Sequence record: PQ471516.1
Strand: one strand, 5' to 3'
Length of the DNA: 64,000 nt
The notes under the pieces: model-generated
What the model was told of the DNA's origin: nothing
Databases searched by the model: none
What the model saw: only the letters and a program-made list of their open reading frames with translations
Program-made: the position numbers and the translations under genes
Part shown: positions 5,458 through 20,521 of the stretch, piece by piece
How the letters are laid out: each line of letters begins with the position of its first letter
Position numbering within the stretch: the stretch's first letter is position 1

Positions 5458-5542
5458 AGTACTTGCAATTAGTTTTCAGTACTGTATAATCTTTTACATC
5501 GACACGGGAAAACGGTTTCCCCTGGTAACTAAGGATAATCAA

Positions 5543-5842
5543 ATGAAAGTTGCAATCATCGCCCTGGCTTTATCTGTATCGTCTTTCGCTGTTAACGCTT
5601 CCGTTGATGTACCGCGTGAAAAATTCATTCAGTGCACTGTTGCAATGACTAACGAGGAAACGGCTGAGATCGTTACCAAATCCCTGGAACTGGCCCCTGC
5701 GATGTTTGCCAATGGCCCGTATCATGAAGAAGATGATCAGGGTAGCACGACCATCTATTACGATGCAAAAAGTAAACGCGGTTCAGTTACTGTAATGGAT
5801 ACTGAGAAAGTTACATTCACGGGAGTAATTAATTGTTTTTAA
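5543..5842 (+). CDS. Exported protein with signal peptide
   Basis: MKVAIIALALSVSSFAVNA fits a Sec signal peptide; RBS AAGGA; start adjusted from 5369. Confidence 0.7.
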   Translation: MKVAIIALALSVSSFAVNASVDVPREKFIQCTVAMTNEETAEIVTKSLELAPAMFANGPYHEEDDQGSTTIYYDAKSKRGSVTVMDTEKVTFTGVINCF

Positions 5843-5858
5843 TGAAGTACTGAATCAT

Positions 5859-5887
5859 AAGCCCACTATAAGAAGTGGGCTTTTTTT
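5859..5887 (+). terminator. Intrinsic terminator
   Basis: AAGCCCACT-N6-AGTGGGCTT plus T tract. Confidence 0.8.
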
Positions 5888-5964
5888 ATTGTAGTACTGA
5901 ATACTTTAAAAATAGTTTTGAAATAGTAGTTGACATTACCAGGGAAAGGCGTAGAATGTATTAC

Positions 5965-6027
5965 ATCAGGACGGGGAACACTAAGTAGACCGCCAGTAAG
6001 TCGAACGAAAAACTGGACACGACCTGG
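5965..6027 (+). ncRNA. Candidate pseudoknotted RNA motif, copy 2 (divergent)
   Basis: After promoter 5930-5957; UAAGUA GAC CG CCAG UAA GUC GAACGAAAAA CUGG. Confidence 0.6.
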
Positions 6028-6072
6028 AAACTTTGATAAACTAAATTACACTTTAATTGAGGAATTAAAAAA

Positions 6073-6552
6073 ATGGCAAATGTAAAATCATTCTTTAAAG
6101 CACTGGTATCTTCTGACGTATCTATCGCCGCTGAATTGCTGGCTGACCTGGATAATGATACCATGAAAGCAGTACGCAATAATTTTAATATGGCGTACAG
6201 TGCAGCAAAAGAACTGCAAGCCAAAAAGGTAGCAGAACTGGAAGCGGCAAAGGCAGAACGTGAAGCAGAACTGCAAGCAACAATCGAAAGCATCCAGGCG
6301 GCGGTAAGTGGATTGGATATCGAGATCGTAACCGATATGGCACATAAAGCCCTAGCTGCAAAATACGGTGAAGTAAAAGCGGTTAAAGAAAAGAAATGGA
6401 TTCAGGACCGCGTTAACGTAGTACTAGACAACGGGGAAGAATATCTTATTCCTGTACGCGGTAACTGCATTGCCGTAGTACTGGACGCGATTAACTCCAG
6501 TGGTATGACACGCGAGGAATGGATCGAAGCTCATCGCAAAGTTGAAGCATAA
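6073..6552 (+). CDS. H-NS-like protein (coiled coil plus H-NS-type C-terminal domain)
   Basis: Ala/Glu coiled coil; C-terminal NGEEYLIPVRGNCIAVVLDAINSSGMTREEWI aligns without gaps to E. coli H-NS [32 protein letters not shown] (from memory). Confidence 0.55.
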   Translation: MANVKSFFKALVSSDVSIAAELLADLDNDTMKAVRNNFNMAYSAAKELQAKKVAELEAAKAEREAELQATIESIQAAVSGLDIEIVTDMAHKALAAKYGEVKAVKEKKWIQDRVNVVLDNGEEYLIPVRGNCIAVVLDAINSSGMTREEWIEAHRKVEA

Positions 6553-6573
6553 CAATAAAAGTACTGAATCACT

Positions 6574-6600
6574 AGCCCACCTTAAACGGTGGGCTTTTTT
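6574..6600 (+). terminator. Intrinsic terminator
   Basis: AGCCCACC-N6-GGTGGGCT plus T tract. Confidence 0.8.
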
Positions 6601-6837
6601 GTGTTTATCGTTTACCAGGCCACCAGCACCGCCTAGAAACGATTCTAACGCATTAAACTGATTATCCGATGCATTGCCCTAGCTGGTGGCGTTAAGGCTG
6701 TAAGAACGCGATTGAGAGCGTTTAAAGTATTTTGCAAAAAGTAATAAAAAGTACTTGCACGATTAAGAGATTAGCGTATAATGTTTTACATCGAGAGGGG
6801 GAAACGGTTCTCCTTCCAAATCAAAGGAATCAAAACA

Positions 6838-7065
6838 ATGGCTATTATCATTACTCGCGTATCTGGTACTACTGGCAACGAACAAGTAGTTGCAGTCATT
6901 ACCAACAAGGAAGGTGCGGAATTGCAAAATGCAATGAATACCTGGGCCGTTAATGAGTTCGGTCAGTGGGCAAGTGTAGCATACATTGAAACCTATCAAG
7001 TGCCGTCGATTAGTTTAACTGATTTGGGCGTTGAGCGTATCCTTTGCCTTGATGAATTAAATTAA
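6838..7065 (+). CDS. Hypothetical early protein
   Basis: Promoter cassette; start adjusted. Confidence 0.8.
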   Translation: MAIIITRVSGTTGNEQVVAVITNKEGAELQNAMNTWAVNEFGQWASVAYIETYQVPSISLTDLGVERILCLDELN

Positions 7066-7151
7066 AAAAGTACTTGCAAAGTAAATCGAATAAAGTATAA
7101 TACATTACATCAAGGGGAGAAAATGGTTCTCCCCACTACAAGGAAACTAAA

Positions 7152-7295
7152 ATGAAAACTTGTCAATGTGGTCAGAAATCTATTACGGGTTTAAAGCGGG
7201 GCGTTGCTCTTTGCCAGTACCATTATAATTTACAAGTATGGGGTAAAGAATGGGCCGACCAGGTGGAAGCAATCAAGAAAGCAAAAAGTAAGTAA
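7152..7295 (+). CDS. Small Cys/His protein (47 aa)
   Basis: Own cassette, RBS AAGGA; CQCG...CQYH; below ORF-track cutoff. Confidence 0.7.
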   Translation: MKTCQCGQKSITGLKRGVALCQYHYNLQVWGKEWADQVEAIKKAKSK

Positions 7296-7374
7296 AAATA
7301 TTATCACAGTGCTATTGACATAGTTTGATAGTACTGGCATAATAGATTTTATCAAGACAACTGAGGAAAATAAA

Positions 7375-7587
7375 ATGGCTATCATTACTAAAATCAAAGT
7401 AAACAAATCACTGGTTAAGCTGGAAGAAGTGAAAGCAGGTTATAAAGTATCGTGGTGCGGTATGTATCGGATGTTCGCAGATATTGATGAAGCGATCAAT
7501 TATTACAGCGACACGGTTAAAAACTTTGTTCGTGCTGATGTGGTTATGGCAGTGGTAACGCACAAAGCAGCGAAAGAAAGTAAGTAA
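7375..7587 (+). CDS. Hypothetical early protein
   Basis: Promoter, RBS GAGGA. Confidence 0.8.
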   Translation: MAIITKIKVNKSLVKLEEVKAGYKVSWCGMYRMFADIDEAINYYSDTVKNFVRADVVMAVVTHKAAKESK

Positions 7588-7676
7588 AAATATTATCACA
7601 GTACTATTGACATAGTTTGATAGTACTGGCATAATAGATTTTATCAAGACAACATATTAATTTAAGGAATACAAAA

Positions 7677-8000
7677 ATGGCTAAAACTATCATTAACACC
7701 GTTTCCCTGGCTGCAATCCGTGCAATCAATGTTGACGGTAAACGTTGGACTGATTCATATGGCAATACTTATCATTCTTGTCATGTAAGCGTTGAACTGG
7801 ATAACGGTTTGAATGATCTGGCGGTTGAATCATTTACTTATGGCTATGAAGATGCATATCAACAAACGGCGTTAGATCTCTTAAAGGAATCAGTAGACGG
7901 GCTTAATACTGATGAAACCTCCCTTACTCGTTTGTGCAATGATCTTAATATCCCGTTGCATTGTACTGTACAGAATGTTAAACGCAAAAAAGATCTTTAA
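7677..8000 (+). CDS. Hypothetical protein, paralogue of 14280..14603
   Basis: Shares RWTDS(Y/H)GNTYHSC and FTYGY. Confidence 0.85.
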   Translation: MAKTIINTVSLAAIRAINVDGKRWTDSYGNTYHSCHVSVELDNGLNDLAVESFTYGYEDAYQQTALDLLKESVDGLNTDETSLTRLCNDLNIPLHCTVQNVKRKKDL

Positions 8001-8080
8001 TTAGCTTTACTTTATGCAGATACTTTGATATAGTGTCTGCATAGGGGAAAGAAATTAAATTAACTTAAGAGGATCGTATA

Positions 8081-8350
8081 ATGAAAAATATCAGTACTTT
8101 AATCGATGCAGGTACACATGTTCGGCGGTCAATGGTTGCAACCAGTACTACAAAACAAGTAGCGAGCGGTTATCTTGTATTTGTGCACGATGGTAAACTC
8201 CTGGAACGTTCAATCAATTTTGATGTTAAAAACAATTGCCGTTTTATTATCTTTAAGCGTGAGCAATATAAAATTGATTTACCAGCAAAGCCCATTAGTG
8301 GGGCGTACAACGTGCAATCATTGTTTGAACGTCAACCATACACCTATTAA
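8081..8350 (+). CDS. Hypothetical protein
   Basis: RBS GAGGA. Confidence 0.7.
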   Translation: MKNISTLIDAGTHVRRSMVATSTTKQVASGYLVFVHDGKLLERSINFDVKNNCRFIIFKREQYKIDLPAKPISGAYNVQSLFERQPYTY

Positions 8351-8401
8351 TCAAAACATCGTTAGCGGTCGATTTAGGCCGCTTATATTGGGGATTATAC
8401 C

Positions 8402-8674
8402 ATGAACGTTAATCAAGTACTGAATGAGATCGAAAGCATCATTAAACCGATGAAGCGTACTGATGCTATGTTAACACCGGAAGAATGCCGCCTTTATGAG
8501 CGTTACAGCGTCGAACAAGTCCAGGCGATGGCTATGGCTACCCCAGCCGTTAAACCGCCTGAGAATGCGTTACAGGACGTTACAGGGGATTATATCATCA
8601 ATCCAGTACTAGGGAAGATGGCTGCAATCACCGAAGATCAACAAGACTACTTAAGCCAGTACTTAAAAGGTTAA
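8402..8674 (+). CDS. Hypothetical protein
   Basis: ORF track, operon context. Confidence 0.7.
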   Translation: MNVNQVLNEIESIIKPMKRTDAMLTPEECRLYERYSVEQVQAMAMATPAVKPPENALQDVTGDYIINPVLGKMAAITEDQQDYLSQYLKG

Positions 8675-8679
8675 TTAAT

Positions 8680-8889
8680 ATGCTTACTGTACAGGATAAG
8701 ATCGACATCTTAAAGGTTAATATGTATGTGATTGATGCAGTACCTGGTAAAGTATTTGCATACGATGACACCACTGTAAGCGATTTCTACTATAGCCAGG
8801 ACGTGGGGGATCTTTCTGTACAGTCGGTTATTGAAAACGTAGTTAATGCAGCGTATGAGCATTTACTTTCAAATAGTACTTGCAATTAG
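8680..8889 (+). CDS. Hypothetical protein
   Basis: ORF track, follows previous gene. Confidence 0.7.
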   Translation: MLTVQDKIDILKVNMYVIDAVPGKVFAYDDTTVSDFYYSQDVGDLSVQSVIENVVNAAYEHLLSNSTCN

Positions 8890-9185
8890 TTTTTAAACGC
8901 GTATAATGTTTTACATGAAGGGGAGAAATGATTCTCCCCACTAATTAAGGAATATGAAATGAAAGCATCAAAAAAGAGTAATACTAAGAAAGCACGTTCA
9001 CCTTTCGCTGGGGTATTCCCTTTACGTTTCGTTGATGAAGTAGTTTCCTACCCGCCGGGCCTTACTCCTGAGATGGTAGAAAGTTTGCGTAAATCTAAAA
9101 AATAGTACTTGCAATTAGTTTTTAAACGCGTATAATGTTTTACATGAAGGGGAGAAATGGTTCTCCCAATAACAGGAGAATCAAA

Positions 9186-9338
9186 ATGAAACAATACAAC
9201 GCTCGGTTTGATGTTACTATCGGTAACGGCAAAGGTCAATTCTCTTTCAGTACTCGCAAAAGTTATACAGAAAACTTCCTGCGTAATTGTGCACTGACCG
9301 CCGCACAAATTAAACATTATTTTCAGGCTAAAAAATGA
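9186..9338 (+). CDS. Small hypothetical protein
   Basis: Promoter cassette, RBS AGGAG; start adjusted. Confidence 0.7.
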   Translation: MKQYNARFDVTIGNGKGQFSFSTRKSYTENFLRNCALTAAQIKHYFQAKK

Positions 9339-9573
9339 AAACATTAGCTTACTATAGTTCGGCCCTGGTCGGTGCATTGATCGCGGCGTTGTTAGTAACC
9401 TATCTATTCTTTATGGTGATTTAAATGAATCCAACAGGTTTAAACTATAAAAGTTGTTCGGCGTTTACGAAAGCAAATAAAGCGAATGCACGTAAAGCGA
9501 AAGTACAGGAATACATCAAGCAAGGCATGACGCGAAAGGCGGCGATTCTAAAAGCTAAAAATAAATGAAAAAA

Positions 9574-9606
9574 GTGGTTGACTCCGGTCAGCCATTTTGC
9601 TATTAT
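9574..9606 (+). promoter_or_regulatory. Palindromic terminator-like element overlapping the promoter of sRNA copy G (also 13315-13349, 16619-16654, 18881-18916)
   Basis: NGG(A/T)TTGAC-TC(C/A)G-GTCAG..CCN then TTT(T)GC-TATTAT; TTGACT-N17-TATTAT with TG extension. Confidence 0.7.
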
Positions 9607-9611
9607 ATATT

Positions 9612-9660
9612 CATTGAGAGATAGCTCACTAGCCCACAGGGTGCATAAGTGTATCTATTA
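9612..9660 (+). ncRNA. Candidate small RNA, family copy G
   Basis: UGAG-AGAUAG-CUCA; GCCC-ACA-GGGUGCAUAAGUGUAUCU; no ORF. Confidence 0.6.
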
Positions 9661-9778
9661 TATAATGTTTGAGTACTGAAAACTATTTTTAAAAAGTACT
9701 TGCAAACTATCTCAATAAGCGTATAATGTTTTACATCGAAAGGGGAAACGGTTTCCCCTGGTAATAAGGAAACAAATC

Positions 9779-10120
9779 ATGACTATCTCAATTGCTCAAT
9801 CTAACTTTGAAAATGAAATCATCGCCCAGGCACTGCGTTTAAATGATGGTCGGGCCGAAATTAATTACGGTTTCAATTCAGGCGGTTGCGAAAACTATCA
9901 GTACTTTGTAACGGCTGATGGCGGTGTCCTGGGTATCAATACAGTTATTGTAAACATCCAAAAAATTAATTTCAATGATCCAGACGATAGCCAGTTTTAC
10001 ATCACTGGCGTAGACGTGAACTATGAGGATGACTCACTAACTGATGATCACACTGGCGAGCGGTTAGAAAGTGCATACGGTGAAGATGATTATCAGTCCG
10101 GTCCAGAAGATTTCGAATAA
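9779..10120 (+). CDS. Acidic hypothetical early protein
   Basis: Promoter cassette, RBS AAGGA. Confidence 0.8.
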   Translation: MTISIAQSNFENEIIAQALRLNDGRAEINYGFNSGGCENYQYFVTADGGVLGINTVIVNIQKINFNDPDDSQFYITGVDVNYEDDSLTDDHTGERLESAYGEDDYQSGPEDFE

Positions 10121-10216
10121 TATAAAAAAATAGTTTGACAATAGATTATAGTACTGTATAATAGTTTACATCAAGGGGAGAAAAACTTCTCCCCACTAAC
10201 AGAGAGAGAAAACAAA

Positions 10217-10429
10217 ATGGCTAATATCCGGTCGAAATTAAAAAATGCAAAACAAGTTTTATTTTCAGATCATGAATACTTTAATAAAGATATTACAGGA
10301 GTTACAAGTATCAAGGAAGTAAAAGAAAAAACCGGCGTTTTGTGTGATGTGCGATTAGTTGGGACATTTGGGAATAACGTGCTATATCGCTGCGGTGATT
10401 ACAATTTTACACTGACTATCATTAACTAA
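10217..10429 (+). CDS. Hypothetical early protein
   Basis: Promoter cassette. Confidence 0.75.
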   Translation: MANIRSKLKNAKQVLFSDHEYFNKDITGVTSIKEVKEKTGVLCDVRLVGTFGNNVLYRCGDYNFTLTIIN

Positions 10430-10512
10430 AAATATTATCACAGTACTATTGACATAGTTTGATAGTACTGACATAATAACTTTTATCAACTACACTACTA
10501 AGGAATTAAAAA

Positions 10513-10692
10513 ATGGCTATCATCGCAAAAACTGAAATCGTTGGTCTGGATTCTATCATCATGACGTTTGAAGATCAAAAAGGTATGTATGTAGTTTCCT
10601 ATGGTGATTATGTTCGGGAGTATGAAACGGTAGACGAAGCCTTTGAAAGTTATATTCGCCAGGTGAATAAAGCATACGACGACTACCGCTAA
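10513..10692 (+). CDS. Small hypothetical protein (59 aa)
   Basis: Promoter 10449, RBS AAGGA; below track cutoff. Confidence 0.7.
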   Translation: MAIIAKTEIVGLDSIIMTFEDQKGMYVVSYGDYVREYETVDEAFESYIRQVNKAYDDYR

Positions 10693-10791
10693 AATATATT
10701 ACCAGTACTATTAAATCTATTGACAACGTTTGATAGTACTGTATAATAAGTTTTATAAACAGTAGTTAACTTAACCTAAGAGAGAAACAAA

Positions 10792-10935
10792 ATGATCGCA
10801 CTGGATTCATTCATCGACGCAGTACTGGCAAAAACTGGCGAGGATCTGACCGCAGAACAATACGCGATGATCGAGCAATGTCAGCAAAACGGTAAATCGG
10901 TGAAAGATACTGTTAAGATTATCCGCAAGATGTAA
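10792..10935 (+). CDS. Small hypothetical protein (47 aa)
   Basis: Promoter 10720; terminator-like hairpin 10942-10968 follows. Confidence 0.7.
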   Translation: MIALDSFIDAVLAKTGEDLTAEQYAMIEQCQQNGKSVKDTVKIIRKM

Positions 10936-11040
10936 TATTATAGCCCACTGGTTAACGCTGGTGGGCTTTAATCATTTACCCTATACAATGCCAGTACTCA
11001 ACCGTTTATCTCGTTAGAATGCGTTACAGGACGTTTAACA

Positions 11041-11238
11041 ATGATTAGCATGAAATCAGTACAAAAACAAATAGAAACATTATCAAAAATTAAACGTAAA
11101 CAGTACTCGTTAGAATATACAATCAATGGTAACTATCATCTAATGAAAGAAAATAATTTTATAGTCATTGATGAATCATTGCAAATTATTAGTATAGTAC
11201 TGAAAGCATTAATTAATGATAGAAAAAAATTAAAATAA
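11041..11238 (+). CDS. Hypothetical protein
   Basis: ORF track; AT-rich, weak RBS. Confidence 0.45.
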   Translation: MISMKSVQKQIETLSKIKRKQYSLEYTINGNYHLMKENNFIVIDESLQIISIVLKALINDRKKLK

Positions 11239-11276
11239 TTGTTGACATACAATGCCAGTACTGGCATAATACTTAC

Positions 11277-11325
11277 ATCAAGACGAGAACGTCACTAACC
11301 CATAGGGTGCACAAATGTAACTATA
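11277..11325 (+). ncRNA. Candidate small RNA, family copy H
   Basis: TTGACA 11242-N17-CATAAT 11265; GACG-AGAA-CGUC; ACCC-AUA-GGGUGCACAAAUGUAAC. Confidence 0.6.
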
Positions 11326-11566
11326 TAACATCGATCAATAAATGATCAAAAAAGTACTGGATCAATTTAGCATAAGGAGTATAATTCTGATCAATTCTTG
11401 TTCAAAGGCAATATACGCAGTTGAATTTATATAGACAGTACAAAGGCGTTACTATCCGTGGTAATGCTGGTGGATATGTAGTATCATATGGTTTGAATAA
11501 GATTAGCACTAGTAGTATTATTGTAGCATTACAGTACTATAGTATTTTTATAATGAGGTTAAAATA

Positions 11567-11824
11567 ATGGCTGTAGGATTTGCGAAGGACGGGGCCGAAC
11601 AAGACGAGATTAACGCAGTGATTCAGGCCGCTGTAAACCACGCTAGAAAGCAAATTAACGCACAAAGAGAATCACTGGTACATTGCCTCGACTGCGGCGA
11701 TAAAATCCCTGAGAATCGACGCCAGGCCGTTATAGGGTGCATGTATTGTATTACTTGCCAGGAGGATCATGATAGTACTTTTAAACGTCAACCGCGTAAT
11801 TGTTGGCATAGATCTATGAGATAA
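11567..11824 (+). CDS. DksA/TraR C4-type zinc finger protein (YbiI-like)
   Basis: CLDCGDKIPENRRQAVIGCMYCITCQ; N-terminus resembles YbiI. Confidence 0.9.
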   Translation: MAVGFAKDGAEQDEINAVIQAAVNHARKQINAQRESLVHCLDCGDKIPENRRQAVIGCMYCITCQEDHDSTFKRQPRNCWHRSMR

Positions 11825-11887
11825 AAAGTATTGACAGTACTGTTAGATAATGTATAATAGTTTACATCTTATCTGAGGATTGAAATC

Positions 11888-12244
11888 ATGGGTATACAAC
11901 ATATCACGCGTACTACTGACAACGGCGAGATCACTGGTTATCAAGTACAGGGCAAAGTAGCACAATTGCAGTACTGGTTTGTTAAACGTGGAATCATTGC
12001 ACCGGATCTTGATTATGACCGTGTAGCGTTTATTGATTCTCTTTATGTTGATCCTGATAGTCGGGGCAATGGTGAAGGTAACGAATTAATGAATGCCTTT
12101 ATCGATGCCGCCGATGATTCAGATTGTATCATCTTAGAATGCGATACGGGAGAAGATAACGCCTTCAATCTTAAAGAATGGTACGAAGGTTTCGGATTCG
12201 AGGTACTGATCGATAGTGAATATCCTATCATGATTTTATCATAG
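11888..12244 (+). CDS. GNAT-family acetyltransferase
   Basis: IDSLYVDPDSRGNGEGNELM acetyl-CoA motif A. Confidence 0.85.
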   Translation: MGIQHITRTTDNGEITGYQVQGKVAQLQYWFVKRGIIAPDLDYDRVAFIDSLYVDPDSRGNGEGNELMNAFIDAADDSDCIILECDTGEDNAFNLKEWYEGFGFEVLIDSEYPIMILS

Positions 12245-12322
12245 TACTTGCATTTAGTTTTCAGTACTGTTATAGTACTTACATCAAGGGGAAACATCTT
12301 CCCCTACTAAGAGGAAATAAAA

Positions 12323-12511
12323 ATGGAAAACTTATCAAGTATTTTAGTACAAGATGATTTCGGTAATCCTGGAAGTGCTATCATTGTTCGGGGCAATAAA
12401 GCAACGTTTGTTATTGCTGGTGGACCCGTACAGCGTAGCATTAAAAATAATGCTGTTACCATTAATAATGTACGCTATCGCTTAGATAAAGAATTAATTC
12501 ATAAACTGTAA
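12323..12511 (+). CDS. Hypothetical early protein
   Basis: Promoter cassette, RBS GAGGA. Confidence 0.8.
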   Translation: MENLSSILVQDDFGNPGSAIIVRGNKATFVIAGGPVQRSIKNNAVTINNVRYRLDKELIHKL

Positions 12512-12596
12512 AAAAGTACTGGACAATAGATTATAGTACTGTATAATAGTTTACATGAAGGGGAGAAATGATTCTCCCCACTAAGAGGAAAGAAAA

Positions 12597-12809
12597 ATGC
12601 AAGGTCAACTAATCGTTCGTAAATGGTCTGATACTAACGAAAAACCGTGGGATGTACAATACATCGCCCCCAATGGTGAATCCAGATATCAACCAGGTGT
12701 AACGCATAGTACTGAGCAATTCGCCGCCGCTCATCGTGAACGTCTGTTACAATCAATGCAGTTCGGTTCCGGTGAAAAATTCATTCAGGATCATTGGCTG
12801 AAAGATTAA
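12597..12809 (+). CDS. Hypothetical early protein
   Basis: Promoter cassette, RBS GAGGA. Confidence 0.8.
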   Translation: MQGQLIVRKWSDTNEKPWDVQYIAPNGESRYQPGVTHSTEQFAAAHRERLLQSMQFGSGEKFIQDHWLKD

Positions 12810-13354
12810 AAAGTACTTGCAATTAGTTTTCAGTACTGTATAATGTTTTACATGAAGGGGAGAATAGTTCTCCCCACTACTAGGAAACAGCATTATGCAC
12901 ATGAATCCGTTTATAGTAGTAATTGCAATCATGATGGCTGTACAGGCCGTGTTAGAATACTTAAGCAAAGCAGGAGTTATCTAAATGATCCAGGTAGAAT
13001 TATCAGTACTCAAAGATCTGTTTTATCGGTTAGGCACTACTGGAGAATACCCGAAAGGTGATACCGCTAAACTATACACTGCATTGGATGTATGGCAACG
13101 TAACGAACTGGCTAACGCCTGGCGTAAAGGTAAATCAGAGGGGATTGCAGCATGAAAGAATTCTTATTCGAAGTAGTGTTTAACCGCGTAGGTGGAAACC
13201 AATTAATTCGCTCAAGTGGTCACAATGTTAATCAAGCGTGGACTAACTTAAAACGAATGTACCCGGACGCGATTACATATCGTAACCCGAAAGAAGTTTA
13301 AAAAGAATTGAAAAAAAGGATTGACTCAGGTCAGTCCTTTTGCTATTATATATG

Positions 13355-13400
13355 CATTGAAACAATCTAGCCCACAGGGTGCATAAATGTATCTATTATA
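13355..13400 (+). ncRNA. Candidate small RNA, family copy I
   Basis: TTGACT 13321-N17-TATTAT 13344; AUUG-AAA-CAAU; GCCC-ACA-GGGUGCAUAAAUGUAUCU. Confidence 0.6.
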
Positions 13401-13484
13401 TGCTGGTGGCTAGTACTATCAAGTACTGAAAACTATTTTTAAAAAGTACTTGCAAAGTATCACGATAAGCGTATAATGTTTTAC

Positions 13485-13557
13485 ATCAGGACGGGGAACG
13501 AAACAAGTAACCCCGTTAAGTAGTCCAGGAGTAAGACATACGAAAACCTCCCCTGAT
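13485..13557 (+). ncRNA. Candidate pseudoknotted RNA motif, copy 3
   Basis: After promoter 13450-13477; AUCAGG/CCUGAU, ACGGGG/CCCCGU, GUC/GAC plus GGAG/CUCC. Confidence 0.65.
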
Positions 13558-13645
13558 AAAATAGTTTGACAATAGTTTTTAGTACTGTATAATATTTTAC
13601 ATCAAGTGGGGAATAGTTCCCCACCTAACAAAGAGAGAAATTAAA

Positions 13646-13921
13646 ATGCGGATTCTACTTACAGCTAACGAAATCGAGCAAGTACTGACTACTAATCTGG
13701 AACAATGGAAACGTGATGCAGATATCCAGGCGGTACAATGGCTTAACGATAAGTTAACGCCGGATGACTTAAGCAAGATTGTAGATCCTCAATTCTACGA
13801 AGATATTCACGACACCGCGTTAAGCGTCGAGGATGTACTTGATAAGCACTTTATTGATACAGATTTACAGGTTTACGGTCGTAAAAACTTTATCACTATT
13901 CACGACATTTACAATACTTAA
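13646..13921 (+). CDS. Hypothetical early protein
   Basis: Promoter cassette. Confidence 0.8.
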   Translation: MRILLTANEIEQVLTTNLEQWKRDADIQAVQWLNDKLTPDDLSKIVDPQFYEDIHDTALSVEDVLDKHFIDTDLQVYGRKNFITIHDIYNT

Positions 13922-14009
13922 GTATTGACAAAGTATCTTAGTACTGTATAATAGTTTACATCAAGTGAGGGGAAACGGTTCCCCTCCTAACAAAGAGAGA
14001 GAAATAAAA

Positions 14010-14192
14010 ATGGCTAAGTGCACTATCTGCAAGAAAGAAATAGTATTAGTTCCAAGTGCCCGTGAACGTGCCGCTCGGTTTGGTGGCAAAGCGTCAGACT
14101 ATACAAAAATGTTTACTGCCCATACAGCTTGCCAGGTAGCAAAACGTTCACAAGAAAGCGTAGAATTAATGCGTAAACTTTCCAAAAAATAA
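14010..14192 (+). CDS. Small putative Zn-binding protein
   Basis: CTIC...HTAC; promoter cassette; start adjusted. Confidence 0.75.
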   Translation: MAKCTICKKEIVLVPSARERAARFGGKASDYTKMFTAHTACQVAKRSQESVELMRKLSKK

Positions 14193-14279
14193 GTATTGAC
14201 AAAGTATCTTAGTACTGTATAATAGTTTACATCAAGCGAGGGGAATGGTTCCCCTCCTAACAAAGAGAGAGAAATAAAA

Positions 14280-14603
14280 ATGGCTATGATCCTTACCCAG
14301 AAAGTAGAACTGAAAATTGTAACCTCCTTTGACATTAAAGTTAATCGGTGGACTGATAGCCACGGCAATACTTACCACTCCTGCTACGTGTCCGCATTGA
14401 TTGGTGATCGCTGGGAAGACCTGGGACACGAAACCTTTACATACGGTTACGGCACACAAGGCGAGTACACGGGTTTAGAAATCATTAAGGAAACTGTAAT
14501 AGGTTTCAACCCGAAAGAGAAAGTACTACACAGAATTGAGAAAGAGATCAACAAAGAAATTACAGTTCGCTACTACGATGTAAAACGTAAGAAAGACATG
14601 TAA
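14280..14603 (+). CDS. Hypothetical protein, paralogue of 7677..8000
   Basis: Shared motifs; cassette nearly identical to the one before 14010. Confidence 0.85.
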   Translation: MAMILTQKVELKIVTSFDIKVNRWTDSHGNTYHSCYVSALIGDRWEDLGHETFTYGYGTQGEYTGLEIIKETVIGFNPKEKVLHRIEKEINKEITVRYYDVKRKKDM

Positions 14604-14693
14604 TAGAATCCATTTAAAGTACTATTTGACATTGCCCAGATAGTACTTTATAATAGACTCTAACTTGTAGTACTAATTAACTTAACTAATAGG

Positions 14694-15098
14694 ATGTACA
14701 CCATGATTACTAAATTCTTCGCTACCCGTGAACAAGCTCGCATCGTTGCCCGTGAGGAAGGTGAAACATTTAAAGACATGGGTAAAGATTCTCCTACTGG
14801 TAAACGCTGGGCGGTACAGTTCAAAGAGATCTCTGATATTGTGAATTCACCTGAGCCTGTACTTACAGCAGCAGAACTAAAGCAAGCTCAAGAACTGGCT
14901 GAAGTACTGAACGCTCAAGATGACTTCTTGAAAGGTTCTGATATTGAAGTTACAGTTAACGCAAATGCATGGACTCACGCGGATCACCTGGCAAACCTGA
15001 AGCGTCCAAGTGAACTGGTTCGCAACCAGAAAGAGATCCGTCATGACCGTAAAGGAAACCGTGTAACAGTATACAGTAAACGCCGCCAGGTTATCTAA
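14694..15098 (+). CDS. Hypothetical protein, paralogue of 1796..2062 with acidic insert
   Basis: Shared N- and C-terminal motifs. Confidence 0.85.
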   Translation: MYTMITKFFATREQARIVAREEGETFKDMGKDSPTGKRWAVQFKEISDIVNSPEPVLTAAELKQAQELAEVLNAQDDFLKGSDIEVTVNANAWTHADHLANLKRPSELVRNQKEIRHDRKGNRVTVYSKRRQVI

Positions 15099-15122
15099 TA
15101 ACTTTGCAGTACTAACCAACAC

Positions 15123-15149
15123 GGCGGGATATCAGTTCCCGCCTTTTTT
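15123..15149 (+). terminator. Intrinsic terminator
   Basis: GGCGGGA-N7-TCCCGCC plus T tract. Confidence 0.7.
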
Positions 15150-15163
15150 ATGGGAGAAACAAA

Positions 15164-15418
15164 ATGATTAAGGTTCAACTATCAAACGATAATGTATTAC
15201 GGGTACACTATAAAGCTCCACAAAGAATCATCACAAAGGCCGTACAGCTTGCTAATGAGTTTATTAATGGTAGTCTATTACCCAGGAAGTTAAGCAACGG
15301 GAAACTACGCGTTATCGATGTAGACACTAACAATAGAATAGTAATTGAGAGTACAGGAAAGATAAACCTTTATGAACACCAACAATATAACAAGAAAATA
15401 AAACTAATATCACGTTGA
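15164..15418 (+). CDS. Possible ParE-like (RelE/ParE fold) protein
   Basis: KA..L...F..G...RKL....VIDV...RIV......LYEHQQYN resembles the ParE-like toxin family pattern (from memory). Confidence 0.45.
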   Translation: MIKVQLSNDNVLRVHYKAPQRIITKAVQLANEFINGSLLPRKLSNGKLRVIDVDTNNRIVIESTGKINLYEHQQYNKKIKLISR

Positions 15419-15471
15419 CAGTACTCAATTGTTTTAGTACTATGTACATATACCAACACGGGAGAAACAAA

Positions 15472-15690
15472 ATGAAATTATCTAAAATCGAAAAGAAAAC
15501 TATTGATGAAGCAGTTAAGCACGGTTATACATTTCGTAATGATTCACATTTTACCAATTTTCAACAAGGGTATCGTACTATTAAAAAACTTATTGACAAA
15601 GGTTTATTAGTTGAAGTCAATAACGGGAACGGTATCGAGTATCAACCAACACAGGACGCATTTTATTTTAAGAAATATAATATTATCTAA
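15472..15690 (+). CDS. Hypothetical early protein
   Basis: Promoter 15415, RBS GGAG; start adjusted. Confidence 0.75.
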   Translation: MKLSKIEKKTIDEAVKHGYTFRNDSHFTNFQQGYRTIKKLIDKGLLVEVNNGNGIEYQPTQDAFYFKKYNII

Positions 15691-15748
15691 TTGACAGTAC
15701 TCAAATGTTTTAGTACTATGTACATATACCAACACGGGGGAAAACAAA

Positions 15749-15991
15749 ATGATTACTTTAGAAAAACGTATCAAAGAAACTACATCGCTGGTGGAACTGT
15801 TAACAGTACTGAAATGTAAAACAACACCATTCAGCACGCCGGACTTTATTAATATGGTTGATGTTAATGGTCGCTATCGCATCACGGTCGAACAAGGAGC
15901 GGCTAAAGTATTCAGTACTAAAAACACTAAGGAAGTGATTCACGCGGTCAGTACTAAAAAAGTAGTTGCCATTTATAGTAAAGTACTGTAA
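15749..15991 (+). CDS. Hypothetical early protein
   Basis: Promoter 15691. Confidence 0.75.
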   Translation: MITLEKRIKETTSLVELLTVLKCKTTPFSTPDFINMVDVNGRYRITVEQGAAKVFSTKNTKEVIHAVSTKKVVAIYSKVL

Positions 15992-16022
15992 GATAGTTTC
16001 ATTAACTCAAGGAGATAACACA

Positions 16023-16607
16023 ATGCGTAACTATACTAAATTCATCCGTACACTTCATGCAATGGAAACTAATAAAGAGATCCTTACAGCTTGTCGGTTA
16101 GCTGGACTGGAGATCGTCGGTGCGGGTTCTTCCCGTATTGTATTCGCTTTGAATGATCGGTTAGTGATTAAGGTCGCAAATTGTGACGCTGGCGTTGAAC
16201 AAAATGAAACTGAATGTAAGGTATGGAATTTTTTAGATTATGACCGTCCACACCTTAAACAGTACTTTGCAAAGGTGCATATGCATTTATGCGATCCTGA
16301 TAATATGTTTATCGTTATGGATCGGTTGAGTACTGCAAGTAAAGGCAGTGTGAAGCACGTTAACGCGTGCAACGAATTAAAGTACAATATTAAACGTAAT
16401 GCTATTGAACGCCAGCACCGCTTTGCTGATGCTCTCAATCACGTTGATGATACATTATCAACACTAACAATCAGAGATATCAGAAAACAGAATATCGGCC
16501 AGGATCGTAATGGACTTATTAAAGTACTTGATTACGGTTTAACCCGCAATATCTGGAATCAGTACTATAAAAAACGTGATGTTAATGCGATAACTATAAC
16601 ACGATAA
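16023..16607 (+). CDS. Protein kinase-like (PKL fold) protein
   Basis: GAGSSR glycine loop, VIKVA, EQNETE, RDIRKQNIG, VLDYG; RBS AAGGAG; start adjusted. Confidence 0.75.
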   Translation: MRNYTKFIRTLHAMETNKEILTACRLAGLEIVGAGSSRIVFALNDRLVIKVANCDAGVEQNETECKVWNFLDYDRPHLKQYFAKVHMHLCDPDNMFIVMDRLSTASKGSVKHVNACNELKYNIKRNAIERQHRFADALNHVDDTLSTLTIRDIRKQNIGQDRNGLIKVLDYGLTRNIWNQYYKKRDVNAITITR

Positions 16608-16659
16608 AAAAGATTAAAAAAGGGATTGACTCCGGTCAGTCCCTTTGCTATTATATATT

Positions 16660-16708
16660 CATTGAGAGATAACTCACTGACCCATAGGGTGCATAAGTGT
16701 ATCTATTA
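16660..16708 (+). ncRNA. Candidate small RNA, family copy J
   Basis: TTGACT 16626-N17-TATTAT 16649; UGAG-AGAUAA-CUCA; ACCC-AUA-GGGUGCAUAAGUGUAUCU. Confidence 0.6.
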
Positions 16709-16829
16709 TATAAGTATTCAGTACTGGAAACTATTTTTAAAAAGTACTTGCATTGTACTTAGAATCAAGTATAATGTTTTATATCGAGAGGGGGAAATGG
16801 TTCTCCCTGGTACATTAAGGAATAAAATC

Positions 16830-17051
16830 ATGACTACAATGACTTGCATTCACGCTTCAAACCTGCTTAATGATGCGGCCTTTAATGTTGAAACAGAATA
16901 TCAATGTTATCGGGATGAAAATAAAAAAGTTTTTGTAGTTGATAATAATGGTTTCCATATTGAATTGCAATCCGGCTTCACTGGCGTTGATGGTAAATCA
17001 GTATGGGGCGTACAGGATGATAAAGGTACATATCATTTTAAACGTAATTAA
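16830..17051 (+). CDS. Hypothetical early protein
   Basis: Promoter cassette, RBS AAGGA; start adjusted. Confidence 0.8.
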   Translation: MTTMTCIHASNLLNDAAFNVETEYQCYRDENKKVFVVDNNGFHIELQSGFTGVDGKSVWGVQDDKGTYHFKRN

Positions 17052-17137
17052 GTATTGACAAAGTATATCAGTACTGTATAATAGTTTACATCAAGGGGAG
17101 AATAGTTCTCCCCACACCAATAAAAGGAAACAAAATT

Positions 17138-17410
17138 ATGTCCAGCTACTCCGCTACTATGATCATCAAAGATATGAACGGTAATCCTACTTCTGCTGGT
17201 GGATCATTTGGAAACATTAACTTAGATGGTCGGTTATCCATGCAATCAGCCATTGATGCAGCGAAAGAAGTTTTTAAGAATGAATGTACTGTAAGCAAGC
17301 TGGATTATATGGGCTTCGCTATCGAGAAAACTAATCGTTTTGTGGACTACAAAAAGCCTATGATGATTGATACTAACCTGAAAGCTAACGAAGTGGAATA
17401 CTTATTATGA
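17138..17410 (+). CDS. Hypothetical early protein
   Basis: Promoter cassette, RBS AAGGA. Confidence 0.8.
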   Translation: MSSYSATMIIKDMNGNPTSAGGSFGNINLDGRLSMQSAIDAAKEVFKNECTVSKLDYMGFAIEKTNRFVDYKKPMMIDTNLKANEVEYLL

Positions 17411-17598
17411 CAGTAGAAGAAGTTAAAAAAGTACTGGCAGTACTACGCTATCATAATCATTGTAAGGTGAAGAATGATCCTGATTATCTTGATTCATCCC
17501 TGGAGGAAGACACCTTAAACGCGATAAGCTATATGCAAACATTAGCAAAGCGTATGACCGAAAAGAATAGGCCGGACTATATAGGAAATAAAATTTAA
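17407..17598 (+). CDS. Hypothetical protein
   Basis: ATGA-coupled to previous ORF. Confidence 0.7.
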   Translation: MTVEEVKKVLAVLRYHNHCKVKNDPDYLDSSLEEDTLNAISYMQTLAKRMTEKNRPDYIGNKI

Positions 17599-17685
17599 AA
17601 AGTACTTGCATTGTAGTTAGATTAACGTATAATGTTTTATATCGAGAGGGGGAAATGGTTTCCCCTCAAGTCCAGGAGATACACC

Positions 17686-17949
17686 ATGAACACTATCGAA
17701 ATCACTATCAATGCACACGTATACGACAACGTAGTACTGCAAACTACTATGACCGCTAATGATACCAGTACTTTGCGGAATACTGTTATTAGTGCCGTAT
17801 GTGCTGCAATCGGTGATGTATCCCTGGAAAATGCAGAACATATCAACAACGGTTTCACTATGTGCAAGCGTGATAACGCAAAACATATCATCGTGGAAGG
17901 TTACGGCGGTGTAGAATTTAATGTTTATATGAAAAAAGTACTTGCATAA
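17686..17949 (+). CDS. Hypothetical early protein
   Basis: Promoter cassette, RBS AGGAG; start adjusted. Confidence 0.8.
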   Translation: MNTIEITINAHVYDNVVLQTTMTANDTSTLRNTVISAVCAAIGDVSLENAEHINNGFTMCKRDNAKHIIVEGYGGVEFNVYMKKVLA

Positions 17950-18016
17950 TAACTAAAACAAAGTATAATGTTTTGCATAGGGGGAGATATCCTCCCCCAC
18001 TAAAAGGAGTAATAAA

Positions 18017-18241
18017 ATGGCTAACTTTGATGAACTGATGCGGGAAGTAGCTAACCTGGCAGAAGAGAAGAAATCATTCGATTCTATCTATAACACCGCT
18101 CACCGTGATTCAGTACTGGCATGTAACCAGGATCAAAAAGATGAACTAATCGCCACCTATCATGAAGCATGGAAGTACTACCGACAATGGGAGAAAGAAG
18201 AAAGTGAGTCTACCATTGACGGCCTCAATAATCTAATCTAA
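18017..18241 (+). CDS. Hypothetical early protein
   Basis: Promoter cassette, RBS AAGGAG. Confidence 0.8.
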   Translation: MANFDELMREVANLAEEKKSFDSIYNTAHRDSVLACNQDQKDELIATYHEAWKYYRQWEKEESESTIDGLNNLI

Positions 18242-18317
18242 AAGTTTTATTTCAGTACTATTGACATAGCTTGATAGTACTGATGTAATAACTTTACTAA
18301 CTACAAGGGGAAACATA

Positions 18318-18575
18318 ATGGAACAGTTCACACAATATCGGGTAAATCATCAAGCTATGGCCTACGTAGAAGACCATAAAACGTTACCAGTACTGCAACC
18401 AGTTAAAGGCCATATCTATCGTGCAATGTCGTGGTGTACGGCTCAGGATGGCTATAAAACCGTAGCCGTTGGTATGTATTGCGGTAATGGTGAATGGTTT
18501 GATCCAAATAATCCGGTAGCCATTGACAGTACTGAACAAATGAAATGGGCCGACTATATCGAGGATATCTCATAA
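18318..18575 (+). CDS. Hypothetical early protein
   Basis: Promoter 18261. Confidence 0.75.
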   Translation: MEQFTQYRVNHQAMAYVEDHKTLPVLQPVKGHIYRAMSWCTAQDGYKTVAVGMYCGNGEWFDPNNPVAIDSTEQMKWADYIEDIS

Positions 18576-18664
18576 AACTATTTGACAGTACTAACCAGTA
18601 ATGTATAATGTTTTACATAGAGCGGGGGAATAGTTCTCCCGCCAATAGTTTGGAGTAAAACATT

Positions 18665-18865
18665 ATGTCTATCGCTATCGCCCTGGTTGAAGTACTGAAA
18701 GAAGCTAAAGCCAACCTTATCGATGTACAGATTAAGGAATTGCAAAACGGCTTAATCGGCTGTACTTGTACCGCTGGTGGAGCGGCAGACTATCGAGAAC
18801 ACGAATCACTCGAATCACTGGTTCGGTATCTTACCATGATCGTTGATGATTGGAGAATCATCTAA
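18665..18865 (+). CDS. Hypothetical early protein
   Basis: Promoter cassette, RBS GGAG. Confidence 0.8.
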   Translation: MSIAIALVEVLKEAKANLIDVQIKELQNGLIGCTCTAGGAADYREHESLESLVRYLTMIVDDWRII

Positions 18866-18921
18866 CAAAAAAGAATAAAAAAAGGGATTGACTCAGGTCA
18901 GTCCCTTTGCTATTATATACG

Positions 18922-18962
18922 CATAGACAAAAACTAGCCCACAGGGTGCATAAGTGTATCCA
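18922..18962 (+). ncRNA. Candidate small RNA, family copy K
   Basis: TTGACT 18888-N17-TATTAT 18911; GCCC-ACA-GGGUGCAUAAGUGUAUC. Confidence 0.6.
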
Positions 18963-19112
18963 AAATATATAGTTAATAACGGTGAGTAACTATCTGCTGG
19001 TGGAGTGAAAACTATTAATAAAAAAAAGTATTGACAAAGTATATCAGTACTGCAATAATGTATCTCGTAGGGCGGCAATGGTGCGACGGCCCACAAAGTT
19101 AGGAGATTCAAA

Positions 19113-19445
19113 ATGACTACTTCAATCGCTATCGTTAAAGCTTTCATCCGTACTAATGTTTCCTCTGTATTCATCGACGGCCTCGACCGTAACGTAGAAT
19201 ACTCAATCATTATCGCACAAACGGCAAACGGTTCTCGGTACATCCTTAATGATAGTGAAGCAAATCACTACTACTTCACTAAAGCCACTGGCTTTAAACG
19301 CATCGATGCTGATGTAGTATACGCTAAGATGAATAAGCTGGTAGACAAGATTAACGCGAAAGGTACTATCGATTTACAGTACTGGACCGAAACCGATCCA
19401 GAATATGGATCTCACCGCTACCTGAATCCGGGTATTAAAATGTAA
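19113..19445 (+). CDS. Hypothetical early protein
   Basis: Promoter 19031, RBS AGGAG. Confidence 0.8.
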   Translation: MTTSIAIVKAFIRTNVSSVFIDGLDRNVEYSIIIAQTANGSRYILNDSEANHYYFTKATGFKRIDADVVYAKMNKLVDKINAKGTIDLQYWTETDPEYGSHRYLNPGIKM

Positions 19446-19534
19446 AAAGTACTTGCATAGTACTTAGATTCATGTATAATGTTTTACATAGAGAGGGGGA
19501 AATGGTTCTCCCTCCTAAATTAAGGAGTTTTATC

Positions 19535-19936
19535 ATGACCTTCTCAATCACTTCCTTCGCTGACGTTTTAGTACTGGCTCGGACTTTTGGTAAAGATGCA
19601 CTGGAGTACGCTGTAAGTAATGGCACTCTCCAACCGGATCAATGCCGCATCATTGGAAACTGCAAACGTTGGGCGGTATCCAATACTATTGCACTAGAAA
19701 ACTTCAACGATGGTAACAATGAGTATTCAGTTGATGCAGTATTCGAAGCCGTTGATCTTGGCGGTATCTATAACACTAACCTAAATGATGTGCGTATCGT
19801 TCGCACTGGCTTCGGTGCTTATGATGTATCTATCCGTGAAGCTATGGACAAGGGATACATTAGCAAGGACTTACTTGCTCACATCATGCAGCTATGGACG
19901 GAACGTAACGAAGCACGTACTATCTTAGGGCTGTAA
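19535..19936 (+). CDS. Hypothetical early protein
   Basis: Promoter cassette, RBS AAGGAG; start adjusted. Confidence 0.8.
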   Translation: MTFSITSFADVLVLARTFGKDALEYAVSNGTLQPDQCRIIGNCKRWAVSNTIALENFNDGNNEYSVDAVFEAVDLGGIYNTNLNDVRIVRTGFGAYDVSIREAMDKGYISKDLLAHIMQLWTERNEARTILGL

Positions 19937-19997
19937 CCATCACTAAACATCATAGGCCGCTCTCTAGCGGCCTTAACTATATCAGGAGTAACCTACT

Positions 19998-20353: not shown

Positions 20354-20521
20354 ACTAAACCAATACCTTAGCGTTATAGTTTAGGGATTGGACTATGTTT
20401 TTATGCGTGGGGGGGCATGGTGCGGGTAACCTTAGCGACTTCGAGAAAGTTGCCATAGGGGTATTGACTTTTTATATGGAACGTGTAAAATCTGAATGAT
20501 ATAAATTATCAAGGAGTCCCC

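Follow-up and report, generated by a model that had tools for sequence, protein, structure and literature searches.

The first 64,000 nt of Escherichia phage Turkey5 (PQ471516.1), a 351-kb Asteriusvirus whose recorded host is E. coli, were analyzed (this whole stretch is referred to as the window). Window 1-20432 is an early region with about 55 small + strand genes and about 30 sigma70-type promoters. By homology to relatives with mapped termini, this region together with the last 1018 bp of the record forms an inferred direct terminal repeat (DTR) of ~21,450 bp, beginning at record position 350,294. Within it lies a dense, mostly one-directional array of GCTGGTGG, the Chi octamer of E. coli RecBCD. 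The features are as follows:

1..20432: the part of the inferred ~21,450-bp DTR that lies in the window
6620..6627 (-): reverse Chi, ~7.6 kb from the inferred left terminus, in the orientation read by RecBCD moving rightward from the left end; it forms the 5' arm of a 9-bp stem with the Chi at 6682 and is conserved in vB_Ec-M-J (7402) and fEgEco12 (6619)
6682..6689 (+): intergenic Chi, 3' arm of the hairpin with 6620, downstream of the terminator of CDS 6073-6552 and upstream of the promoter at ~6747
10957..10964 (+): intergenic Chi in the 3' arm of the terminator hairpin AGCCCACTGGT-TAAC-GCTGGTGGGCT after CDS 10792-10935; the 5' arm pairs through G.U, so no reverse Chi is created
11466..11473 (+): Chi inside the small annotated CDS 11421-11567, in frame GCT GGT GGA (Ala-Gly-Gly); absent at the homologous place in vB_Ec-M-J
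12416..12423 (+): Chi in CDS 12323-12511, in frame GCT GGT GGA (Ala-Gly-Gly)
13402..13409 (+): intergenic Chi abutting the repeated ~100-nt element 13300-13401, 40 nt upstream of the promoter at 13442
15787..15794 (+): Chi in CDS 15749-15991, in frame x-CTG-GTG-G
17195..17202 (+): Chi in CDS 17138-17410, in frame GCT GGT GGA (Ala-Gly-Gly)
18773..18780 (+): Chi in CDS 18665-18865, in frame GCT GGT GGA (Ala-Gly-Gly)
18996..19003 (+): intergenic Chi, 28 nt after the repeated element 18867-18968 and ~30 nt before the promoter at 19029; the first Chi met by RecBCD entering the right terminus, 1,429 bp from the DTR boundary
61855..61862 (+): isolated Chi in a long ORF (61771-62913), in frame Ala-Gly-Gly; it belongs to the genome-wide background and not to the array

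One further pair, CCACCAGC-ACAA-GCTGGTGG, lies just upstream of the window start at record 350850/350862, still inside the repeat. All eleven coordinates and strands in the preliminary description were exact. Its count of five intergenic sites agrees with the GenBank annotation if the reverse copy is included (6620, 6682, 10957, 13402 and 18996). Its statement that three sites follow shortly after sRNA copies was only partly true, since 13402 abuts and 18996 lies 28 nt after a repeated ~100-nt element, 11466 lies about 130 nt after a related motif, and other copies of these elements have no Chi.

In order to determine whether the array could arise by chance, several controls were run. Dinucleotide shuffles of the window gave 0.48 matches on both strands, with a maximum of 2. 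Markov models of order 1-4 fitted to window 1-20350 predicted 0.16-0.44 sites on + and 0.04-0.10 on -, compared to 9 observed on +, so the preliminary estimate of about 0.1 per strand per 20 kb was of the right order of magnitude. Among the 168 octamers with the same base composition, Chi occurred 9 times, while the mean was 0.3 and the next best was 3. Chi was the most over-represented octamer in this block that is not part of the repeated promoter and 5'-UTR elements. When the whole 351,311-bp genome was analyzed, 12 of 23 Chi sites (10 on +, 2 on -) were found in the inferred repeat, which is 6.1% of the genome, and 11 in the other 330 kb. This is a 17-fold density difference, or 26-fold for the + strand (binomial P = 1.9e-9), confirming that Chi density is not similar genome-wide.

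The placement of the repeat rests on homology, as the termini of Turkey5 were not measured and the record is deposited as circular with a single repeat copy. Window 1-20432 is collinear with the DTRs of vB_Ec-M-J (annotated, 21,525 bp) and fEgEco12 (20,993 bp by PhageTerm, confirmed by restriction digests) (PMC13070987, PMC11895373). The left-end sequence AGTAGGCAGAGG... is identical to position 1 of both relatives, and the right junction GCGGGTAACCT|TAGCGACTTCG, aligning to window 20,432, is also conserved. The proposal in the preliminary description that the block is a terminal repeat in an E. coli/Salmonella-type host was supported, although the true unit is the whole DTR, starting 1,018 bp before the window, rather than 6620-19003. 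With the termini placed in this way, the + sites face the right terminus (nearest at 1,429 bp) and the - sites face the left terminus (nearest at ~556 bp). In phages with mapped termini the corresponding distances are 375-1,361 bp on the right and 483-577 bp on the left.

The same pattern was found in three other groups of related jumbo phages, at non-homologous positions. Klebsiella phage fENko-Kae01 has 12 + and 2 - sites inside its PhageTerm DTR (1-19736) and 2 in the next 30 kb. Klebsiella phage Muenster has 7 + and 1 - inside DTR 1-20030 and none in the next 30 kb, and a second complete RaK2-like genome, OU509535, has 9 of its 20 sites in the ~20 kb homologous to that DTR (P = 7e-7). Erwinia phages Kaldavass and XbC2 each have 7-8 + sites in the same early block. 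The concentration of sites was also seen in the DTRs of vB_Ec-M-J and fEgEco12. The sites lie in unrelated contexts, including coding sequence, terminator arms (the design at 10957 occurs also at 19354 of fENko-Kae01), hairpins and, in fENko-Kae01, promoter spacers, indicating that the octamer is what is conserved and not a larger repeat. The left-end palindrome keeps both octamers between genera while its loop and flanks diverge. In DTR ORFs of at least 45 aa, all 3 Ala-Gly-Gly tripeptides are spelled GCTGGTGGN, although GCT is 30% of Ala codons and GGT 48% of Gly codons, and the Ala-Gly-Gly in the small CDS 11421-11567 is spelled the same way. The + sites are skewed toward the right end of the DTR (pooled mean fractional position 0.62, KS P = 0.047).

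Taken with some confidence, the best explanation is that these sites form a selected, cis-acting array which probably turns host RecBCD from a destroyer of the phage DNA end into a helper that recombines the two repeats, although no experiment links these phages to RecBCD or RecA. Virion DNA is linear, with one repeat copy at each end. RecBCD loading on a right-hand double-strand end, such as the right terminus of injected DNA or a later right-facing end left by terminase or by breakage, would travel leftward through the right repeat copy and meet correctly oriented Chi at 1.4, 1.7, 3.2, 4.6, 7.0, 8.0, 9.0, 9.5, 13.7 and 20.9 kb. At Chi the enzyme stops destroying the 3'-ended strand and loads RecA on it. 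That tail has a homologous partner in the same molecule only if it is repeat sequence, and this explains why the array stops at the repeat boundary. Invasion of the left repeat copy would circularise the genome or prime rightward, recombination-dependent replication and concatemer formation, a direction co-oriented with almost all transcription. The two reverse sites, one of them half of the palindromic Chi hairpin ~0.56 kb from the left terminus and the other at ~7.6 kb, are probably the left-end counterpart of the array and not noise. In agreement with this reading, fEgEco12 DNA is cut by ordinary restriction enzymes, so it is not heavily modified, and no Pfam family of a known RecBCD inhibitor was found among the 55 DTR proteins. 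However, nearly all early proteins have no known function, and an unrecognised RecBCD inhibitor or end-protecting protein could make Chi irrelevant. The phage also encodes its own T4-type recombination set (UvsX/RecA, UvsY, gp46/47-like nuclease and endonuclease VII). The 10:2 strand asymmetry is unexplained if both ends are equally exposed, and a G-rich octamer arises more easily on the G-rich + strand (expected ratio about 5-10:1).

A bolder form of this reading is possible, though somewhat less likely than not. RaK2-like jumbo phages of several groups, although virulent and equipped with their own T4-type machinery, might carry a conserved, DNA-encoded way of using RecBCD, consisting of a unidirectional Chi array that exactly fills the ~20-kb terminal repeat and a bidirectional Chi hairpin guarding the left tip. 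Host RecBCD and RecA would then carry out the first repeat-repeat recombination (circularisation or the start of recombination-dependent replication) before any phage protein exists. The strand bias would reveal which genome end is exposed to RecBCD, and so the polarity of DNA entry or packaging, and these phages would be unexpectedly dependent on recBC and recA.

Other explanations involving RecBCD were considered less likely. The array might act late, on replicating or concatemeric DNA, and not be needed for the infecting genome. When terminase cuts at a repeat and holds one end for packaging, the right-facing end would be open to RecBCD, and Chi would preserve that end and recycle it into the replicating pool by recombination. 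The orientation logic is identical to the lambda/LLS model, in which the left end is occluded by terminase and the right end is open (PMC12315714), the array lies exactly where terminase must cut, and the phage's own recombination proteins could handle the infecting genome. However, the packaging direction in these phages is unknown, and by late infection many homologous copies exist, so Chi anywhere in the genome would be useful, which does not explain strict confinement to the repeat. It is also unlikely, to a similar degree, that the array is only a passive shield for the early genes and the repeat, which as a side effect shortens the stretch open to RecBCD-dependent CRISPR adaptation, as Chi appears to limit spacer acquisition (Levy et al. 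2015). Correctly oriented Chi lies within 0.4-1.4 kb of each mapped end, the left-end palindrome lies in a gene-free leader ahead of the first gene, and a shield works without phage gene expression, which we infer would suit a 350-kb genome that may enter slowly. In contrast, a shield needs sites only near the tip, whereas here the sites are spread over the whole 20 kb and stop at the repeat boundary, which fits a requirement for a homologous partner better. Since Chi recognition and RecA loading are coupled in RecBCD, protection without recombination is hard to separate from the main explanation.

It is very unlikely that the octamer serves as a binding site for another phage or host protein, or as a structural element of transcripts, with its identity to Chi coincidental. 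The five intergenic + sites of Turkey5 do lie in or beside predicted hairpin arms. The pairs 350850/350862 and 6620/6682 and the terminator at 10957 are clear cases, while the pairings at 13402 and 18996 appear in the minimum-energy fold but not in the centroid at 18996. Four fENko-Kae01 sites lie in promoter spacers. However, half of the sites are inside coding sequence with no partner arm, and a hairpin would tolerate compensatory change, yet the stem is exactly Chi in two genera while the loop differs. The motif equals the host's Chi in every phage examined, and the palindromic pair is not specifically enriched in viral contigs in general (46 hits, by a rough estimate not far from chance). 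An origin without selection, through G+C content, codon usage, gene duplication or host-derived DNA, is effectively refuted by the controls. The DTR has higher G+C than the rest (38.4% against 34.6%) and four coding sites share the frame Ala-Gly-Gly, but composition-matched and Markov expectations were at most 0.44, the unrelated flanks exclude duplication, half of the sites are intergenic, and the array recurs independently, with positional turnover, in four phage lineages.

Terminally clustered Chi is already known from other phages, while no report of it for jumbo phages was found in the literature searched. P1 and its relatives P7 and D6 have strongly over-represented Chi, denser toward the packaged DNA ends in or near the terminal redundancy and with many sites outside ORFs, for which RecBCD- and RecA-driven recombination of direct terminal repeats was proposed to circularise injected linear DNA (Subramaniam and Smith, bioRxiv 10.1101/2021.07.08.451572; PMC12315714). 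P1, however, is temperate and packages by headful from pac, with variable ends and a 5-10 kb redundancy, its Chi sites are nearly randomly oriented, and its RecA/RecBCD dependence is shown experimentally. Turkey5 is a virulent myovirus with, by homology, fixed ends and an exact ~21-kb repeat, a 10:2 orientation bias and a sharp stop at the repeat boundary. LLS-type lambdoid phages have many Chi sites, about 7:1 in the orientation active for RecBCD entering from the right end, clustered toward that end, and they grow better with RecBCD and have no anti-RecBCD gene (PMC12315714). They have cohesive ends and no terminal repeat, and their sites spread over the genome with half in the rightmost 22%, whereas the Turkey5 array is essentially limited to 6% of the genome. 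In lambdoid phages abundant Chi goes with the absence of a phage recombination module, so the analogy is imperfect.

Phage T5 also has a long exact direct terminal repeat carrying the earliest genes of a virulent coliphage, but this 10,219-bp repeat has only two Chi sites, both on + and inside genes, indicating that a DTR alone does not demand Chi. In linear multimers of rolling-circle plasmids, correctly oriented Chi seems to protect a free double-strand end from RecBCD (Dabert, Ehrlich and Gruss 1992), although that is an experimental system with single inserted sites and not a natural conserved array tied to a repeat. In the E. coli chromosome the same octamer shows a co-orientation bias relative to a direction of DNA metabolism, and + strand Chi on the G-rich strand is the orientation that serves rightward-moving forks. 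Chromosomal Chi occurs about once per 4.6 kb on both strands, mostly inside ORFs and largely explained by codon usage, compared to one per 2.1 kb on one strand in the Turkey5 repeat, half of them intergenic, in an AT-rich genome where about 0.2-0.4 are expected.

An exact search of the window recovered the octamer GCTGGTGG at every coordinate listed in the preliminary description:

window 6682 to 18996, + strand, nine Chi sites
window 6620, - strand, one Chi site
window 61855, + strand, one further Chi site

In contrast, dinucleotide shuffles of the 64-kb window gave an expectation of 0.48, and Markov models of order 1-4 fitted to the first 20 kb predicted 0.16-0.44 sites on + and 0.04-0.10 on -. 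Among the 168 octamers with the same base composition, Chi occurred 9 times, while the mean was 0.3 and the runner-up had 3. The only octamers more over-represented in this block belonged to the repeated early promoters and their 5'-UTR hairpins. In order to determine whether Chi was carried by a larger repeat, the flanks of the ten sites were compared. They were unrelated to each other, and only two sites followed the same repeated element, indicating that the count was not inflated by a repeat family.

Escherichia phage Turkey5 (PQ471516, 351,311 bp, host E. coli) is an Asteriusvirus, a jumbo myovirus of the 121Q/RaK2-like group. The first 20 kb hold about 55 small + strand genes, nearly all of unknown function, together with about 30 sigma70-type promoters (TTGCAA or TTGACA, N17, TATAAT). 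When the 55 proteins encoded in the direct terminal repeat (DTR) were searched for known RecBCD inhibitors, Pfam recognized only a ParE-like toxin domain, a DksA/TraR zinc finger, a GNAT acetyltransferase, a Ser/Thr kinase and some DUFs, and the PHROGs families had no known function. The ParE-like match (PF24732, E = 3e-10) was to one of the 55 annotated CDSs in window 698-20207, and in Klebsiella phage Muenster the homologous block is annotated with YafQ-like toxin and YeeU-like antitoxin genes. The promoters and the repeated non-coding elements of this region, the latter presumably the "sRNA copies" of the preliminary description, were as follows:

window 580-19540, about 30 near-identical early promoters (AAAAGTACTTGCAA or TTGACA, N17, TATAAT, then TTTACAT), all pointing rightward, each followed by a short G+C hairpin (GGGGAGAA...TTCTCCCC) and a ribosome-binding site
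window 13300-13401 and 18867-18968; 9558-9704 and 16606-16752; motif CCCAYAGGGTGC at 210, 2465, 9633, 11299, 16681 and 18938, repeated non-coding elements of ~100-150 nt with a very stable 12-bp hairpin (AAAGGGAUUGAC-UCAG-GUCAGUCCCUUU) followed by a second stem

This is the densest promoter array in the window and defines the repeat as an immediate-early block. ARAGORN and Rfam found no tRNA or known RNA family for the repeated elements or for the 6620/6682 hairpin, and only some copies of the elements were followed by a Chi.

The block was identified as a terminal repeat by comparison with relatives. Phage vB_Ec-M-J (MJ) carries an annotated direct terminal repeat at 1-21,525 that is collinear with the window, fEgEco12 has a 20,993-bp repeat found by PhageTerm and confirmed by restriction digests, and Sharanji has one of 20,668 bp. 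The first bases of MJ and fEgEco12 (AGTAGGCAGAGG...) are present in Turkey5 at record position 350,294, and the right junction of the fEgEco12 repeat (...GCGGGTAACCT|TAGCGACTTCG) aligns to window 20,432. The inferred repeat of Turkey5 is therefore record 350,294-351,311 plus window 1-20,432, a total of 21,450 bp. The GenBank record, which is declared circular, is a collapsed assembly that begins 1,018 bp inside the inferred repeat, so that the physical left end lies at the far end of the record, outside the window.

When Chi was counted in the whole genome, 16 sites were found on + and 7 on -. Ten + and two - sites lie in the repeat, whereas six + and five - sites lie in the other 329.9 kb, mostly inside genes and co-oriented with them. 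The density is 0.56 per kb against 0.033 per kb, a 17-fold difference (26-fold for +), with binomial P = 1.9e-9. Two sites that could not be seen in the preliminary description, since they lie outside the window, form a perfect palindrome, CCACCAGC-ACAA-GCTGGTGG, at record 350,850/350,862. It is located ~0.56 kb from the inferred left terminus, in a gene-free leader. A scan of IMG/VR for the palindromic Chi pair as a general viral terminal signal gave 46 contigs, mostly unrelated mid-size ones plus 121Q itself, which by a rough estimate is about what chance allows for 16 fixed bases, and was uninformative.

Within the genus, all ten window sites of the cluster have exact counterparts in fEgEco12, as does the left-end pair, and none occurs in the 9 kb beyond its repeat. 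MJ has all but one. The pattern also recurs in other groups of related phages, where the sequences no longer align. Klebsiella phage fENko-Kae01 (about 29% ANI; PhageTerm repeat 1-19,736) has 12 + and 2 - sites in the repeat and 2 in the following 30 kb, and it has the same left-end palindrome with a different loop (TTAA) and diverged flanks. Muenster (Alcyoneusvirus; repeat 1-20,030) has 7 + and 1 - sites in the repeat and none in the next 30 kb. A second complete RaK2-like genome, OU509535, has 9 of its 20 sites in the ~20 kb homologous to that repeat (P = 7e-7). Erwinia phage Kaldavass and Xanthomonas phage XbC2 (Mimasvirus) each have 7-8 + sites in the same early block. The same number and orientation with different positions is the signature of selection on the array, not on individual sites. 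XbC2 (OP292654), reported on Xanthomonas vesicatoria, was considered as a host contrast, and its cluster of the enterobacterial octamer within 1-17,500 comprises 7 + and 2 - sites. However, XbC2 is nearly collinear with the Erwinia phages and is not a clean contrast; either Xanthomonas RecBCD reads the same octamer, or the evolutionary host of the phage is an enterobacterium.

In Turkey5, five + sites are coding and five are intergenic, although only about 30% of the repeat is non-coding. Four of the five coding sites are in the frame GCT GGT GGA. All three Ala-Gly-Gly tripeptides in DTR ORFs of at least 45 aa are spelled as Chi, and so is the one in the small CDS 11421-11567, whereas GCT is only 30% of Ala codons and GGT 48% of Gly codons there. 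Intergenic sites are fitted into whatever tolerates a G-rich word:

record 350850/350862 and window 6620/6682, two hairpins with Chi in both arms
window 10942-10967, a terminator, CCACTGGT-TAAC-GCTGGTGG, with Chi as its 3' arm, while its 5' arm pairs through G.U and so creates no reverse Chi
fENko-Kae01 19338-19363, the same terminator design in a second genus, with Chi at 19354
fENko-Kae01, four sites in the spacers of early promoters

In both terminators the RNA hairpin is kept by G.U pairs while the DNA carries Chi on one strand only.

In linear virion DNA, the right repeat copy presents ten active sites to a RecBCD enzyme entering the right terminus. The first is 1.4 kb in for Turkey5 and fEgEco12, 0.4 kb in for Kae01 and 1.1 kb in for Muenster. 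The left terminus faces the reverse half of the palindrome at about 0.5-0.6 kb and a second reverse site at about 7-7.6 kb. The + sites are moderately skewed toward the right end of the repeat. If each site were recognized some 20-40% of the time, ten sites would give about 90-99% capture and two would give 36-64%. After Chi, RecBCD preserves the 3'-ended strand and loads RecA. That tail can find a partner in the same molecule only if it is repeat sequence, which would explain why the array ends at the repeat boundary. By inference, invasion of the left copy would circularise the genome or start rightward, recombination-dependent replication, co-directional with transcription and with the monotonic positive GC skew.

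The array is real, selected and conserved across RaK2-like jumbo phages, and use of host RecBCD is the most likely mechanism, although in the absence of functional data this can be held with only moderate confidence. The proposal of the preliminary description, that the block is a terminal repeat whose Chi orientation serves RecBCD entering from the right, was supported as far as sequence can test it, whereas protection of the right-end copy and its recombination with the left are inferred. On the other hand, the phage has its own UvsX, UvsY, gp46/47 and endonuclease VII, RecBCD inhibitors among the unknown early proteins cannot be ruled out, and the 10:2 asymmetry is unexplained. The same machinery could also act late, on the free end left when terminase cuts a concatemer, which is the lambda/LLS logic but explains confinement less well. 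Alternatively, the array could be a pure shield that also limits CRISPR spacer uptake, but a shield would not need to span the whole repeat. A function unrelated to RecBCD, such as a hairpin or a protein-binding site, is unlikely, since half the sites are coding and the palindrome stem is exactly Chi in two genera while its loop varies. Chance, composition, duplication or host-derived DNA are excluded by the controls.

Chi concentrated in or near the terminal redundancy and used for RecBCD-driven circularisation has been proposed for P1 and its relatives, and right-end-clustered, correctly oriented Chi helps LLS-type lambdoid phages that lack recombination genes. The present case works like these but is a virulent jumbo myovirus with fixed ends, an exact ~21-kb repeat and its own recombination module. 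Its orientation bias is strong, whereas P1 sites are near-randomly oriented, the array stops sharply at the repeat boundary, and a bidirectional Chi hairpin is present at the left tip. T5, another long-repeat coliphage, has only two Chi in its repeat, indicating that the array is not a general property of long repeats. Papers on fEgEco12, fENko-Kae01, Sharanji and CBB and a 2026 review of jumbo phages do not mention Chi, and the only mention of RecBCD among them is a "RecD" gene-product label in the Sharanji paper. Full-text searches of the literature examined found no link of Chi or RecBCD with Asteriusvirus, RaK2-like or other jumbo phages. Published work on this group only assumes circularisation through the repeats. 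A Chi array confined to the repeat gives a concrete, testable mechanism for how such phages survive host exonuclease attack on their ends and convert a 350-kb linear molecule into a replicating form, and it extends the recent idea that some phages recruit RecBCD instead of inhibiting it from temperate P1 and lambdoid phages to virulent jumbo phages that have their own recombinases. Furthermore, Chi clustering predicts the position and extent of the terminal repeat in collapsed "circular" assemblies such as this record, as well as host factors (recBCD, recA) that could limit the use of these phages in therapy.

Two other features of the sequence were noted. AGTACT-containing octamers (CAGTACTG, AGTACTGA, TCAGTACT) are strongly over-represented both inside and outside the repeat, and also in fENko-Kae01; for example, CAGTACTG occurs 29 times in window 1-20431 and 26 times in 20432-64000. 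This is a genome-wide palindromic motif of unknown role. At record 330,035-345,731, about 4.5 kb upstream of the repeat, a tandem family of about a dozen minus-strand genes is annotated as RCC1/HERC1/Kelch-like beta-propeller proteins, and homologues are present at the same place in Erwinia phage Kaldavass.
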